A stretch of DNA of 64,000 nt, from the sequence record OQ722176.1; one strand, given 5' to 3'. A program made the translations under genes and the position numbers. Shown in pieces: positions 10,423 through 54,262 of the stretch. Position 1 is the first letter of the stretch; each line of letters begins with the position of its first letter. The notes under the pieces were generated by a model. The model was given only the letters and a program-made list of their open reading frames with translations, did no database searches and was not told where the DNA came from.

Positions 10423-10836
10423 TTACAGACCGATTGCTAGTTTGAATAGAGCAGACGCCTTGCCACCATCGAAAACTTTACCAGTTGCTTTCAAAGCACC
10501 CATCAGTTTACTCATGTCACGCATAGAGTCAGCACCAGATTCAAGAACGAATTCAGAAACGAACGTATCTAGTTCAGAGTCTGAGATTTTCGCAGGTAAT
10601 AGAGACTCAAGCACAGCGTTTTCTTTGTTAAGAATGTCAACGTGGTCGCCTTGAGCGTGCTCAAGTGCTAGTTTGTTGTTGTCAATCGCGCTAGAGATTA
10701 CTTTGATACAAGATTCGTCATCGTGATTCTGACGACGGTCAAGTTCACTCATGATAACACCCAGAACGGATGCCACTGCGTTGTTACGGTCTTTACGTGC
10801 TTGTAGACGTGTTGCTTTGATAGTTTCGATGATCAT
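10423..10836 (-). CDS. GatB/YqeY-domain protein
   Basis: ENAVLESLLP..MRDMSKLMGALK..DGGKAS are YqeY motifs. Confidence 0.85.
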   Translation of the reverse strand: MIIETIKATRLQARKDRNNAVASVLGVIMSELDRRQNHDDESCIKVISSAIDNNKLALEHAQGDHVDILNKENAVLESLLPAKISDSELDTFVSEFVLESGADSMRDMSKLMGALKATGKVFDGGKASALFKLAIGL

Positions 10837-11246
10837 ACTATGCCACTCTCAATTTTTCTGTTATCAATAATGTGTTTAATTGTGAAGCCCATTTGGCTAA
10901 TGCCTTTTAAAGCCTCTTCGATGAAAGACAACGTATCTTTCATGTGTTGGAAACGAGCAATCGCAACTTGTAGATATTCATCACCTGCAAGTGCGTACTT
11001 CATTTCACTCTTCTCAACGATGAAATCACAAACTTCATCATCGTGTTTGCCGCTATAAAAGAGCCAGCGGTCTTTTCTCACAGCTTCCATTTTCATTTCA
11101 GCTTTAATAAGAAGTTGTCTTGCATCGGCTCGATATGCAAGCCACTTTGCATGAAGAACAGGGATGCGTACGGCTGCTGTTTCTAGTGCAGTCGTATCGA
11201 TCTTAACGTCTTCATGGTATTGTGCTTTTAAATCTTGTAGCTTCAT
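10833..11246 (-). CDS. uvsY: recombination mediator UvsY
   Basis: MKLQDLK..EDVKID..IPVLHAKWL..FTIKHIIDNRKIESG; synteny with uvsW. Confidence 0.93.
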   Translation of the reverse strand: MKLQDLKAQYHEDVKIDTTALETAAVRIPVLHAKWLAYRADARQLLIKAEMKMEAVRKDRWLFYSGKHDDEVCDFIVEKSEMKYALAGDEYLQVAIARFQHMKDTLSFIEEALKGISQMGFTIKHIIDNRKIESGIV

Positions 11247-11266
11247 ATAATACCCTCGCTTCATCA

Positions 11267-11295
11267 AGTATACATATCATTCGGGTGTCTGTAAA
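11267..11295 (-). promoter_or_regulatory. uvsY promoter (GTTTA class)
   Basis: GTTTACA-17-TATACT. Confidence 0.8.
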
Positions 11296-11299
11296 CAAG

Positions 11300-11370
11300 A
11301 ATCTCACTAATACTTCTAATATCACTAAAAGTACTAATTCTACTAAGATGATGCGGAATTTTTCCGCCTC
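11300..11370 (-). repeat. 71-bp iteron/hairpin cassette, copy 1
   Basis: 62/71 identical to 53904-53974; five TTAG at 9-bp period. Confidence 0.9.
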
Positions 11371-11392
11371 TTACCAGTTTCGCTTCGCATAC

Positions 11393-11416
11393 AAAAAAAA
11401 GCCCCGAAGGGCTTTT
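11393..11416 (-). terminator. terminator after gene 35
   Basis: GCCC-TTCG-GGGC followed by T8 on minus strand. Confidence 0.9.
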
Positions 11417-11417
11417 C

Positions 11418-14099
11418 TTATTTCATTGAATAGTCAATAGCTGTTAGCGTGTTCTCATAGAAACAAGCAACTTTCACTTCAGACACGATAGGTAATGCCC
11501 ACATTGTTTGACTTTCAGTTAACGATCCCTCATCACGATAGCGCAAGAACATCTTAGCGTGTTCTGATTTCCATCTATAAAAACTAATTGCATTCGCTGT
11601 ATATGAACCAATGCCTTTTGCTGTTATCACATTTGGATCATCTTCAGGGTTGTAAACACCGAAGTAGTTTTTGTATTTGTCTTCAAATGCTTGATGTTGC
11701 GCATCTGTCCAGTCATGTGGCAATATGAATGCTTGCAAAAGAATCCACTTTCCGTTTGCATCAGGGAAATTATCAACCCGGTCTATAGTAGCGTATGTTG
11801 AGGCATCTGTCCCGTCTGCCATTGTAAGCGTGCTGAATGATCCGCCACTCGTCTTAACACGACAACTGAAATGCAAATAACCCGCATCCTTGTCAATCGA
11901 GTTAACCCACAATGACAAGAAATATGGTCGAGTTGGGTCGATGTCAACTTCACTCATTTCAATCATTGATTGCGTACCCGTCGAGCGAGTGAAACACTTC
12001 TCGCCGTTTGTTAGCACGTAGTTACCCCAATGAACATTGTCACTCTCACGAAGTGGCATTGTAACACCGTCATACAGATTCGAATCTGAATTGTATGCAT
12101 TAAGCCAACTTGTGTCATCAACTGCATTTCCTGAGATTGGCGAGTTGATTACGTCTTGAGCAGCCATACCATTGATGTTCGAGATCATATGAGGCACGCC
12201 GTCTGGCGTAGAAAATCCGCCTTTGAACAATAGAGCATAGTCAAAATACTCTTGATCTAAGTCAGACCATACGCCAAATGTAACTGCTCCTGCTGGTACA
12301 GGTACAAAGTACTCTTGAGTTTCGAACATTTCAGACGAACCAAATATAGCATTCTGACGACCTATTTCAGCATTGATAGCGTTGTAGAATCTCAAGTTGC
12401 AAGATTTAGTTCCGTTACCGATTGCAGTTGTTCGGTCAATGCAAGCCCTGACTTTGTAAATCAGGTTTTGACCTTCAACAATACCATAGTCAACAATGTT
12501 CTGACGTTGATCAACTGGCACAATATCACGTGCTAATAAAGCGTTGCCGTAACCTGCTGAACCGATTCCATCTTTGTCTTCGAACGCAGTATCTACAATG
12601 CTATCACCCTCAGCGAGGTGAATACAACGATCATACACAATTCCCAGATCAGCACGACCGAATGCAGCGTAGCTATACGGATAATTTCCGAAATACGAAG
12701 CACCTCGATACTCAACTGGTCTGTATTGATTGATTGCAGTATCTACCGCAGTATCTGCATACATTGACCCGTTCGATATGATAAGAAATATCTCATTTGT
12801 CAAGTTATTCAACGCATTGATAAAGTTACTTCTCTGCGTCGAGTTGTTTAACAGATATTTGCTGTTTGTCTTCACTGTCATGTTATCATTGAAAATGATG
12901 ATTCTGATTTGTGAAGTTGCTCTTGCTTCTGGTGTGAATACGCTAACGTCATTCAAATAACATGATGCTAGATTTGAGCTTCCGTTTGCTACACCTGTTG
13001 CTACTAGTCTAAAATTGTTGTTTGAAAACTCTCTTAGATGTCGCGTTGCAAGCTCATACTCGCCTATCATCGAACCAACTGGTGCATAAATCCACAGTTC
13101 AGTAATGTTTACTGTTTGACCGGGACCTGGCGTTGTATTTCCAGTGTATGCTTCTTGTTGACCAATTGCATACCACCACGATGAGCTATCAACCGAACCA
13201 TCTGCAAGTGACTGAGGTCCCGTATTGAACTCTAAACCACCCCAGCTACTAGCTGTAGACTGAATCGAGATTGCTTCATACCCACGAACCCCACCTGCAT
13301 ACGCATCGTAATCGCCCGTGTAGTTTTTGATCAATGGTGCATCTGACATCATGAAGTTGGTAATCCAACGTTTTCCAGTCGGAACTTGACCACTTGTGTT
13401 CGTATAGCCGACAAACCACGACATATTTGACGTGTTTAGAGACGATGGTGTTGTGATTCTAGCATAGTGTCGTTTCCACACGATGCCGTCAATTGTTACT
13501 TCATTTCCCGCTGCTTCGAAAACATCCCCGGGAGTCGGGCTTAGTGAAGACGCTGTACCTGACGCATTGAACCATTGCGCATGAAAAATTGCCGCAGTAT
13601 CATGGTCTGATTCGTTTTCATATCCCACCCAACAAGACAGTGTATATGTTCTGTTTGGAAGTAAACGTGTTTGAGGTATATCAAATCTTAGCTGATTGTT
13701 TATTGCAGGCGTTGGCTGTTCTATTGTATACTTCGACGACCCGGGATTCGATTTCTCGATGATATTCCACGTGCCTGTTGTCGATGTCTGCTCAGTTACA
13801 GATACGCCACCTGCTAAGTTACCGTTTGTTAGAAATTGACCAACGCTGTTTGCTGCAAAGTTGTTACTCTGCTTCCAAATGTTAGTTACACCGAGTTCAG
13901 GGTAGTGTAGCTTGAATTGGAATTTGCCGTCTTCACGGCGAAATTCCTCAAGTCCATTTAATGCACTGAATTTAGCTTCAATGTCGGGATCTGACCCGAC
14001 ACTTCTAGCCTCAGCGTTGGAGGTGAAATAAACACCTCCTGTAGAGTCGTGGCGAAAGACAAGAAGCCAATCGCCGTCACGTTTAAGTCTTTCGTACAT
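11418..14099 (-). CDS. 35: tail fibre hinge gp35 with large N- and C-terminal extra domains
   Basis: Core NFINALNNLTNEIFLIISNG, YSYAAF, LRFYNAIN, VPVPAGAVTF matches T4 gp35; immediately downstream of gene 34. Confidence 0.8.
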   Translation of the reverse strand: MYERLKRDGDWLLVFRHDSTGGVYFTSNAEARSVGSDPDIEAKFSALNGLEEFRREDGKFQFKLHYPELGVTNIWKQSNNFAANSVGQFLTNGNLAGGVSVTEQTSTTGTWNIIEKSNPGSSKYTIEQPTPAINNQLRFDIPQTRLLPNRTYTLSCWVGYENESDHDTAAIFHAQWFNASGTASSLSPTPGDVFEAAGNEVTIDGIVWKRHYARITTPSSLNTSNMSWFVGYTNTSGQVPTGKRWITNFMMSDAPLIKNYTGDYDAYAGGVRGYEAISIQSTASSWGGLEFNTGPQSLADGSVDSSSWWYAIGQQEAYTGNTTPGPGQTVNITELWIYAPVGSMIGEYELATRHLREFSNNNFRLVATGVANGSSNLASCYLNDVSVFTPEARATSQIRIIIFNDNMTVKTNSKYLLNNSTQRSNFINALNNLTNEIFLIISNGSMYADTAVDTAINQYRPVEYRGASYFGNYPYSYAAFGRADLGIVYDRCIHLAEGDSIVDTAFEDKDGIGSAGYGNALLARDIVPVDQRQNIVDYGIVEGQNLIYKVRACIDRTTAIGNGTKSCNLRFYNAINAEIGRQNAIFGSSEMFETQEYFVPVPAGAVTFGVWSDLDQEYFDYALLFKGGFSTPDGVPHMISNINGMAAQDVINSPISGNAVDDTSWLNAYNSDSNLYDGVTMPLRESDNVHWGNYVLTNGEKCFTRSTGTQSMIEMSEVDIDPTRPYFLSLWVNSIDKDAGYLHFSCRVKTSGGSFSTLTMADGTDASTYATIDRVDNFPDANGKWILLQAFILPHDWTDAQHQAFEDKYKNYFGVYNPEDDPNVITAKGIGSYTANAISFYRWKSEHAKMFLRYRDEGSLTESQTMWALPIVSEVKVACFYENTLTAIDYSMK

Positions 14100-52959: not shown

Positions 52960-52988
52960 TTGACAATAACACACCAATACCCGATAAT
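52960..52988 (+). promoter_or_regulatory. early promoter
   Basis: TTGACA-17-GATAAT. Confidence 0.8.
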
Positions 52989-53034
52989 AAACACATCAAG
53001 ACGAGATACACAAACTACTTTAAGAGAGAACATT

Positions 53035-53865
53035 ATGACAATCACTAAATCAGAAATGAAAGCAATCGCAATCGACCTAATGAGCGGCAACAATCTAATG
53101 CAACGCGATTTGCTTGCTGAAGGCTGGTCTTTTGAGTTTTCAACTCGTAAAGCTGCACTTGGTGATTGTAACTACCGTACTAAAGTTCTTCGCCTTTCTG
53201 AGAAATACTTGAACGCTCGTACTAAAGAAGAGCAAATCAACACAATCACTCATGAAATGGCTCACGCAATCGCGTACACTGATTTCAACGAAACTGGTCA
53301 CGGTGCAATCTGGAAACGTGTACACCGTCAACTAGGTGGTACGGCTGAACGTTGTTCAAAAGTTTCTAACCCAGAAGCAGTAGACAGCAAGTACGTAGTT
53401 TTCTTCGAAAACAACAAAGGCGAACTTGAAGTTGTTCAGAAAATGGATCGCATGACACGTCGTTTTCAGCCAGTACACATCAAGTCTCTATACTTGAAAG
53501 GTCGTAAAGCTGAAACTGAAGGTCAACTTCGTTGTGTATCTTCAGCGACTTTCAAAATCATCAAAGCGAATCTTGAAGCGACAAAAGCTGACAATGCTAA
53601 AGCAGTTGAGCCAGTAGCTCCTAAAGCTGAACCTAAAGCAGAAAAGAAAGAAGCGCCTAAAGCTGCTCCTGCTAAAGTATCTGCACGTGGTCAAGCTGCT
53701 CGTGACGCAATCGCAGAAATCGTAATGACTACAACTCACAAAGGTTGCAAGTCAGTATCTTTCGAACAACGCGGTAAATACAAAGATTGGTACATCATGA
53801 TTGAACTAGACGCTCACACAATCGAGCAGCGCCTAGACACTTTCAAAAAGAAACACAGCTTGTAA
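53035..53865 (+). CDS. SprT-like zinc metalloprotease
   Basis: ALGDC, HEMAH (HExxH), GHGAIWK; start corrected. Confidence 0.85.
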   Translation: MTITKSEMKAIAIDLMSGNNLMQRDLLAEGWSFEFSTRKAALGDCNYRTKVLRLSEKYLNARTKEEQINTITHEMAHAIAYTDFNETGHGAIWKRVHRQLGGTAERCSKVSNPEAVDSKYVVFFENNKGELEVVQKMDRMTRRFQPVHIKSLYLKGRKAETEGQLRCVSSATFKIIKANLEATKADNAKAVEPVAPKAEPKAEKKEAPKAAPAKVSARGQAARDAIAEIVMTTTHKGCKSVSFEQRGKYKDWYIMIELDAHTIEQRLDTFKKKHSL

Positions 53866-53877
53866 TTCTCTCAATCA

Positions 53878-53897
53878 GCCCCGAAAGGGGCTTTTTT
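53878..53897 (+). terminator. terminator
   Basis: GCCCC-gaaa-GGGGCTTTTTT. Confidence 0.9.
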
Positions 53898-53903
53898 AGG
53901 TTT

Positions 53904-53974
53904 GAGGTGGAAAAATTCCGTCTCATCTTAGTAGAATTAGTAGTTTTAGTAATATTAGAGTTATTAGTAAAATT
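53904..53974 (+). repeat. 71-bp iteron/hairpin cassette, copy 2
   Basis: 62/71 identical to reverse complement of 11300-11370. Confidence 0.9.
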
Positions 53975-54004
53975 GTTTAAGAACCGCCTTGATAGCCGTA
54001 TAAT
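53975..54004 (+). promoter_or_regulatory. GTTTA-class promoter
   Basis: GTTTAAG-17-TATAAT. Confidence 0.8.
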
Positions 54005-54022: not shown

Positions 54023-54262
54023 ATGATAACGATATACACAATTCCTAACTGTGACGGCTGTCGTCACGCTATCTCCCTCTGTAAGTTCAAAAACGTCCCG
54101 TATACTGTAATCGAGTTGCAGTCTCAATCTGACATCGACGAATTGCATAGAAAGCTTGGTGGTGTTCGTAATATTCGAGTTCCGCTTGCCATGCACGGTG
54201 ATACATACATTGGTCACCTGCCTGAATTAAAGCGATTTGTTGATAACCAGACGTATAAATAA
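54023..54262 (+). CDS. glutaredoxin
   Basis: YTIPNCDGC, VP, YIG. Confidence 0.88.
   Translation: MITIYTIPNCDGCRHAISLCKFKNVPYTVIELQSQSDIDELHRKLGGVRNIRVPLAMHGDTYIGHLPELKRFVDNQTYK
54254..54261 (+). promoter_or_regulatory. T4-type late promoter
   Basis: TATAAATA upstream of gene 24. Confidence 0.85.

Follow-up and report, generated by a model that had tools for sequence, protein, structure and literature searches.

What is the function of an array of five TTAG units, repeated at an exact 9-bp period, that lies with a hairpin and a promoter just upstream of uvsY in a T4-like phage, and does its position mark an origin of replication? The stretch of 64,000 nt that was analysed (the window) comes from the Vibrio phage vB_VspM_VS2 (OQ722176.1), a KVP40-like phage of Schizotequatrovirus, and window positions are obtained by subtracting 62000 from the positions in the record. 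A first-pass annotation had proposed this locus as a candidate origin by analogy with ori(uvsY) of T4, or else as an upstream activator array. We find that the cassette upstream of uvsY is not unique to that gene but is one of 6 conserved intergenic copies per genome, and that it is most likely a docking site at gene boundaries and not a uvsY-specific replication origin.

Anatomy of the two cassettes in the window

Every item of the anatomy described by the first-pass annotation at 11267-11370 is present on the minus strand and was confirmed to the base (Table 1). HP1 is joined to the array by ATC, and the array itself has a GC content of 0.24 with a single C on its sense strand. The promoter scores 10/12 and is the sole sigma-70-like site on scanning positions 10500-12000. 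It may be noted that for the terminator at 11397..11416 the scan scored the plus strand, and the minus-strand T run was read directly. The array is also not a chance arrangement: four TTAG at 9-bp spacing occur at 2 places in the 64-kb window, with 0.00 expected from 100 shuffles, and in the uvsY array Tandem Repeats Finder detects periods of 9 and 18. The mechanically called uvsY ORF starts with a TTG at 11267, inside the -10 hexamer. The true start is most likely the ATG at 11246, which is preceded by GAGGG at a distance of 6 nt and gives a protein as long as KVP40 uvsY.

Table 1. Coordinates of the features of the uvsY and nrdH cassettes, in window positions
Feature	Position	Strand	Remarks
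Stop codon of 893-aa gp35-like ORF	11420-11418	-	KVP40 homologue annotated gp35, tail-fibre hinge protein
Intrinsic terminator	11397..11416	-	GC stem, UUCG loop, T8 run
GCGAAGCG motif	11381..11388	-	10 nt upstream of hairpin; 5' edge of cassette
Hairpin HP1, GAGGCGGAA-AAA-TTCCGCATC	11350..11370	-	Inner 6-bp stem GCGGAA/TTCCGC
Array of five TTAGN5 units: TTAGTAGAA, TTAGTACTT, TTAGTGATA, TTAGAAGTA, TTAGTGAGA	11302..11346	-	Exact 9-bp period
Early promoter, sigma-70-type	11267..11296	-	GTTTACA 11296-11290, 17-bp spacer, TATACT 11272-11267
uvsY	10833..11246	-	137 aa; ribosome-binding site GAGGG 11257-11253
Terminator, second cassette	53877..53897	+	GAAA loop; after SprT-like gene, upstream of second copy
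HP1, second cassette, GAGGTGGAA-AAA-TTCCGTCTC	53904..53924	+	9/9 pairs if two G-U wobbles are counted
Array of five TTAGN5 units, second cassette	53928..53972	+	Second place in window with TTAG at 9-bp spacing
Promoter, TTTAAG-17 bp-TATAAT	53976..54004	+	Upstream of glutaredoxin gene
nrdH-like glutaredoxin gene	54023-54262	+	Called nrdH in KVP40 annotation

The second place with this spacing belongs to a full cassette at 53877-54004 (+), which the first-pass annotation had not linked to the one at uvsY. In this nrdH copy CATC stands between the hairpin and the array, and at both copies the -35 falls within a degenerate sixth unit. The preceding gene (52960-53865, +) encodes a SprT-like metallopeptidase, the C-terminal half of which includes a K/A/E/P-rich low-complexity stretch. 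In 6E35.1a the homologue follows alc by one gene, and in KVP40 it is placed likewise behind a gene annotated as 'inhibitor of host transcription'. Both terminators of the window (11397-11416 and 53877-53897) have stable tetraloops, UUCG and GAAA respectively, with A and T runs on both sides, and may be bidirectional.

Copy number and distribution

The KVP40 and VS2 genomes were assembled from fetched pieces and searched with a profile of the cassette core. Exactly 6 strong matches were obtained in VS2 and 6 in KVP40 (E <= 1e-19), and no weaker or partial copies were found by the profile between these matches and noise in the two genomes. Conservation across relatives, by which the first-pass annotation had suggested that its proposal be checked, is borne out, the core being retained at the identical six syntenic sites in KVP40, VH7D and VS2 (6 copies each). 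The downstream genes at these sites are gene 1 (after gene 3), wac (after gene 12), uvsY (after gene 35), nrdH, an unnamed 178-aa gene and a lipoprotein gene, and the cassettes map to 19, 45, 73, 116, 159 and 212 kb of the 250 kb of VS2. The layout comprises an optional terminator, GCGAAGCG, a hairpin of 6-9 bp, CATC, (TTAGN5)5-6 and an optional sigma-70-type early promoter. The cassettes always lie between co-directional genes, in sense orientation with the local transcription.

On BLAST search a 114-bp cassette query matched 51 Vibrio phage records and nothing outside Vibrio phages, with 5 or 6 cassette places in each of the full-length genomes among them. The more distant phages 1.081.O, 6E35.1a and F86 also keep the cassette at the sites examined. 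Outside the KVP40-like clade the UvsY homologues have <40% identity; the region upstream of uvsY in Shewanella phage Thanatos-2 has no TTAG array, and in Aeromonas phage G2 uvsY lies directly behind another ORF, the cassette being absent there. A cassette-specific pattern scan of IMG/VR returned KVP40 and VH7D only, plus 2 chance coding matches. Generic scans for TTAG at a 9-bp period in viral, genome and metagenome collections are uninformative about hosts; most of the matches listed are 9-bp tandem repeats with no relation to the cassette, and a good many of these are perfect. Judging from these searches, only KVP40-like Vibrio phages have this cassette family.

A few marine metagenome contigs also have the cassette, one type in a different gene context. 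In this type (L459:3380-3760 on the minus strand, also L395, L404 and L426) the cassette is placed amid other genes, GCGAAGCG lies ~50 nt 5' of the hairpin as against the usual 10-14, and further downstream there is a second GCGAAGCG. The hairpin of L426 has an altered 5' arm with no compensating change. Also, in 4 public runs with KVP40 the Logan contigs stop at the uvsY cassette (L126:5364-5428), where the word depth is 4-5x that of the flanks; these runs resemble DNA in their low or uniform depth, and the runs listed for the VS2 sequence include none of RNA. Contig ends together with such a depth are the signature of a collapsed repeat, so that short-read assemblies break at the six copies.

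Conservation of the array

For the analysis of conservation we used 22 copies having 127 TTAG units. TTAG is invariant in 127/127 units, and each of the 22 copies has either five or six units at an exact 9-bp period. The remaining positions of the unit show preferences (T > A > G at position 5, a purine at 6, G or A at 7, T or A at 8 and A > T at 9), and C is found at only 11/635 of them, which leaves the sense strand nearly C-free. The CATC linker and the inner stem of the hairpin are nearly invariant. From the invariance of the tetranucleotide we conclude that the TTAG boxes appear to be read base-specifically.

Core identity is 0.92 among orthologues, 0.862 among paralogues of the same genome and 0.857 between different sites across genomes. 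Between VS2 and KVP40 the core remains at 0.87-0.92 even where the flanks fall to 0.53-0.64. This pattern of identity shows that the six copies are old and are held by purifying selection, with no homogenisation or concerted evolution.

Context of the six copies

A terminator is present upstream of 4 of the 6 VS2 copies, the other two being without one, and a promoter matching 9-10/12 follows 5 of the 6. Between the last unit and the -35 there are 4 to 22 bp, depending on the copy, and the boxes span about -40 to -90 with the -35 intact. No promoter is found at the lipoprotein site (212158-212255 of the VS2 record, L146:36652-36761; 129639-129735 in KVP40), where the array runs into the Shine-Dalgarno (SD) sequence and the start codon. 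Here the fifth unit gives AGGAG and the sixth gives ATG (GTG in VH7D), an arrangement kept in the 3 phages; the gene product has an LPAM_1 signal with Cys at position 17. The term 'upstream activator array' therefore suits five copies and fails at the sixth, which runs into a ribosome-binding site and start codon and has no promoter.

At the 5' side, GCGAAGCG occurs in 4 of the 6 VS2 sites (wac, lipoprotein, uvsY and gene 1). Most of the remaining copies have it at the corresponding place, and in most copies 10-14 nt separate it from the hairpin. The upstream ORF at the lipoprotein site terminates within GCGAAGCG (K-S-E-A-K-stop), and in two cases the last codons and the stop of the upstream ORF come from the 5' edge of the cassette. 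The heptamer GCGAAGC occurs 2-4x over the base-composition expectation on both strands of the VS2 and KVP40 genomes. As a special signal it was rejected because it is over-represented genome-wide and its listed non-cassette occurrences resemble coding DNA; it is informative only through its fixed position in the cassette.

It may be added that downstream of one cassette RefSeq KVP40 has a 690-bp gap without CDS (79213-79904, L003:29213-29904), at which locus tag 0136 is skipped. VS2 (L145:34016-34552) and 6E35.1a have in that gap a conserved acidic ORF of 178 aa with no Pfam match, and its promoter, TTGACA-17-TAATAT, is the best-matching of the six.

Pairing in the hairpin and the array

Among the aligned cells of HP1 in the 22 copies, 91% pair. 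Two pairs go from G-C to C-G together in 3 copies, where GCCCAA/TTGGGC stands in place of GCGGAA/TTCCGC: one copy of KVP40, upstream of gene 1, and two of VH7D. At one further pair 11 copies have G-U and 9 have G-C. That both stem forms coexist within one genome argues for pairing, and not base identity, as the feature that counts there. We conclude that HP1 is probably a genuine structural element, which would require a single-stranded state at some point.

One alternative reading is that the cassette acts as RNA in transcripts reading in from the upstream gene, either through HP1 and an adjacent A-U/G-U hairpin of the UUAG array or through a ring-shaped RNA-binding protein on the UUAG repeats, the outcome being processing, stability, termination or translation control of the downstream gene. 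The folding of the sense strand is in favour of this. Sense RNA of 11297-11392 forms two hairpins at -25.3 kcal/mol (z = -3.2, with 0/200 shuffles as good) against z = -0.9 for antisense RNA, and the sense strand as single-stranded DNA gives z = -2.0. When only the array is folded, the mean is -8.0 kcal/mol for sense and -0.1 for antisense, and all 22 copies do better than their within-unit shuffles (mean z -1.9); UUAG is self-complementary with wobble, and the unit consensus pairs antiparallel with itself. Over the alignment, 85.5% of cells pair as compared to 36-60% with slid partners, and 8 cells are changed on both sides against 2.5 in shuffles, the copies being related. Also, the rare C in the nrdH and uvsY copies is paired with G (C-G going to G-U or A-U at one pair), the sense strand is otherwise almost free of C, SD and AUG lie within the array at the lipoprotein site, and every copy is co-oriented with transcription.

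Yet column shuffles of the same alignment already give 83.9%, so the pairing of the array is mostly a matter of column composition, and the strength of the array hairpin at uvsY (-11.7 in VS2 and -4.8 in KVP40) is not conserved between orthologues. The invariant TTAG, with no strengthening change of U-G to C-G in 127 units, points to base readout over pairing. Moreover, a position behind a terminator (4/6) and ahead of the downstream promoter (5/6) is the least transcribed spot. In Rfam 15 no family was matched at its gathering score, the best scores being 13-20 bits against thresholds of 50-90 (E >= 0.56). We regard the array hairpin as unproven and an RNA function of the cassette as rather unlikely, though still a serious rival. 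Two other candidates were ruled out, namely a Rho utilisation site, as the sense strand is without C, and a cruciform in duplex DNA, as the stems need G-T wobbles on one strand only.

A proposed docking platform at gene boundaries

From the sequence comparisons we infer that an oligomeric factor may dock on the core, which would be its strand-oriented platform for the control of transcription at unit boundaries. We consider this the best reading, plausible but not yet to be called probable. The earlier description of the locus as a binding array for a putative factor remains a good one and can be extended to all six loci. Several protomers of one sequence-specific factor would bind, one per TTAG box and five or six in a row, and the hairpin would nucleate or delimit this row. 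The complex would sit at the boundary of two co-directional transcription units, where it would stop or modulate polymerases that come in from the gene upstream. It would also tune the downstream early promoter at those sites at which the -35 is overlapped by the last box or directly adjoins it. The form read by the factor could be duplex DNA, the displaced sense strand or nascent RNA. Since orientation with transcription, boundary position and promoter independence are common to all six copies, a boundary or roadblock role would fit 6/6, whereas a pure promoter-activator role fits 5/6 on account of the promoter-less lipoprotein copy.

A few points count against docking. The 9-bp period is off the helical repeat and is unusual for activators that bind duplex DNA. 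A simple duplex operator is also disfavoured by the covariation of the hairpin and by the wobble-dependent, sense-only folding, both of which suggest a single-stranded form. Four copies stand behind an efficient-looking terminator, which would leave little read-through to block, and six dispersed low-GC sites would suit origins equally. A Pfam search of the genes neighbouring the cassettes gave no DNA- or RNA-binding candidate.

As for the factor, KVP40-type phages have no recognisable MotA and retain AsiA, and a functional MotA analogue has been postulated for them. The core could then be the platform of a putative KVP40-clade protein that is either a MotA replacement working with AsiA or a dedicated replication initiator, though we give this only a small chance. 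If it is a MotA replacement, the six cassettes would be the 'middle-mode' control points of the clade; if it is an initiator, they would be its set of origins, all with one motif, unlike T4.

The cassettes as possible replication origins

The origins oriF (the same as ori(uvsY)) and oriG of T4 are R-loop origins that have a MotA-dependent middle promoter and a downstream A+T-rich unwinding element (PMC3016281). The uvsY promoter of VS2, TTTACA-17-TATACT, has no TGCTT MotA box in its spacer. The 60 nt after the -10 have a GC content of 0.33-0.44 at the six VS2 sites as against 0.425 for the genome and are thus not A+T-rich; the A+T-rich part is the array, upstream of the promoter (0.18-0.31). 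With six paralogous copies, no MotA box and no downstream A+T-rich element, the analogy with T4 ori(uvsY) fails. Of the first-pass proposal of an origin at uvsY, the motif array is real, and the origin reading itself is weakened.

A broader form of this reading is that all six cassettes are replication origins of KVP40-like phages, or loading sites for a helicase or primosome. An initiator would bind the TTAG boxes and the A+T-rich array would open, aided by negative supercoiling behind the early promoter and stabilised by the sense-strand hairpins. The low GC content of the array and the single-strand signatures, which are specific to the sense strand, agree with this. T4 has at least 5 origins, and most of its early synthesis begins in late-gene regions (Kreuzer and Brister 2010, PMC3016281); the VS2 copies are six and dispersed, with three within late-gene blocks and one at the map position of T4 oriF, just upstream of uvsY. 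A cluster of evenly spaced direct repeats, as in iteron-type origins, is seen in 22/22 copies examined, and T4 oriE likewise has evenly spaced direct repeats (12 nt, at a single locus), depends on an early promoter and is conserved in relatives (PMC3016281).

However, the T4 origins have no common motif, and a link of the oriE iterons to replication itself is unproven (PMC3016281). The defining features of T4 oriF and oriG are absent here, and one copy has no promoter. Classical iterons are 17-22 bp in length, from which contiguous 9-bp units with a 4-bp core differ. Also, the GC skew changes sign at 25, 64, 80 and 243 kb, positions that do not match those of the cassettes. On this evidence an origin function of the six cassettes is rather improbable, though it too is a serious rival. 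Host DnaA was rejected as the binding protein, there being no DnaA box; the TAG-rich triplet pattern is, we presume, only loosely like DnaA-trios.

Terminator-promoter modules and coding sequence as alternatives

In T4-type phages, promoter-early stem-loop (PeSL) cassettes have been described (Arbiol et al. 2010; Comeau et al. 2014, PMC4122927), which consist of a stem-loop A3-4G3-loop-C3T3-4 followed by TTGYVH-N17-TAWWAT; they are found in nt-1 and KVP40 and are said to be unusually conserved there (PMC4122927). If the six cassettes were PeSL-type terminator-promoter modules only, serving as substrates of homologous recombination, the TTAG array would be a functionless inherited A/T-rich region. 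The resemblance is clear: modules of this kind are on record for nt-1 and KVP40, and our cassettes likewise have a repeated intergenic stem-loop or terminator, a sigma-70-like early promoter, SD and start, with outer parts that match the consensus in most copies. In favour of this reading, the hairpin alleles CGCATC, CGTCTC and GGGCATC are distributed differently among the sites between phages, and the 5' edge supplies the last codons and stop of the upstream ORF at two sites. But PeSLs are associated with hyperplastic regions beside indels or replacements, and no such association is found for the cassettes in VS2, KVP40 and VH7D, which share six fixed, syntenic core-gene sites. Paralogues of one genome are no more alike than copies across genomes, as homogenisation would have made them. 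A neutral A/T-rich spacer would not be expected to keep a strict 9-nt phase, an invariant TTAG and always five or six units. The published PeSL text mentions neither GCGAAGCG nor the second hairpin nor phased TTAG boxes. The modules themselves are incomplete at some sites, the promoter being missing at one copy and the terminator at two VS2 copies. We therefore hold a role as recombination module alone to be very unlikely.

That the array is coding sequence, with a repeat of 3 codons, is hardly credible: the 9-nt period does preserve the frame and hypothetical proteins are annotated over the cassette in F86 (L142:1423-1626) and D48x phages, but one sense frame meets a TAG at 9-nt intervals, ORFs extending over the array cross terminator, hairpin and promoter, and their frame and extent vary among copies. 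The F86 and D48x ORFs are probably spurious, and at uvsY the overlapping ORFs are short and cross both terminator and promoter, in agreement with the first-pass statement that no ORF accounts for the array.

Significance and comparison with known systems

KVP40-like phages keep AsiA without a recognisable MotA, and the cassette may bear on their switch from early to later prereplicative transcription, and also on where these phages begin replication. A short core in six copies, under strong selection and with a phased invariant tetranucleotide, provides a concrete experimental handle. For annotation and assembly it is of practical concern, since spurious ORFs are called across the cassette and short-read assemblies break there. 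In the PeSL papers and T4 reviews covered, the TTAG array was not found mentioned. Compared with PeSLs, the known portion of the cassette is the PeSL-like terminator and early promoter, and the new portion is the strongly constrained inner core.

Among the T4 origins, oriF is similar in lying immediately upstream of uvsY with a promoter within an element of ~100 bp, and differs from the cassettes, which have a -35/-10 promoter, downstream DNA that is not A+T-rich and six copies. The short, evenly spaced direct repeats near an early promoter recall oriE; unlike its 12-nt repeats at one locus, the cassettes have a 9-nt period, a 4-nt invariant core, a flanking hairpin and six loci. In T4 the -35 is replaced by the MotA box, one 9-bp site at -30 with TGCTT, whereas the cassettes keep an intact -35 and have their boxes at about -40 to -90 with a variable offset. 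The setting is nevertheless alike: uvsY and gene 1 of T4 have middle promoters, the cassettes precede both genes, and AsiA is kept in the clade.

Regularly spaced short boxes, each taken by one subunit of an oligomer, are also known from the operators of ribbon-helix-helix proteins (omega heptads and MetJ metboxes, with a period of 7-8 bp) and from the RNA sites of TRAP and HutP ((U/G)AG repeats, that is UAG or GAG triplets, with a period of 5-7 nt). The cassettes resemble these in their regular spacing and differ in having a period of 9, a comparison made at the level of sequence. The boundary role proposed for the docking platform would find a likeness in the stoperators of mycobacteriophage L5, which are asymmetric sites dispersed over short intergenic regions, all oriented with transcription, at which one phage protein blocks the elongating polymerase. 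A stoperator is a single site of 13 bp, present in about 30 copies and bound by the repressor of a temperate phage, while the cassettes are arrays of five or six boxes with a hairpin, present in six copies in a virulent T4-like phage.
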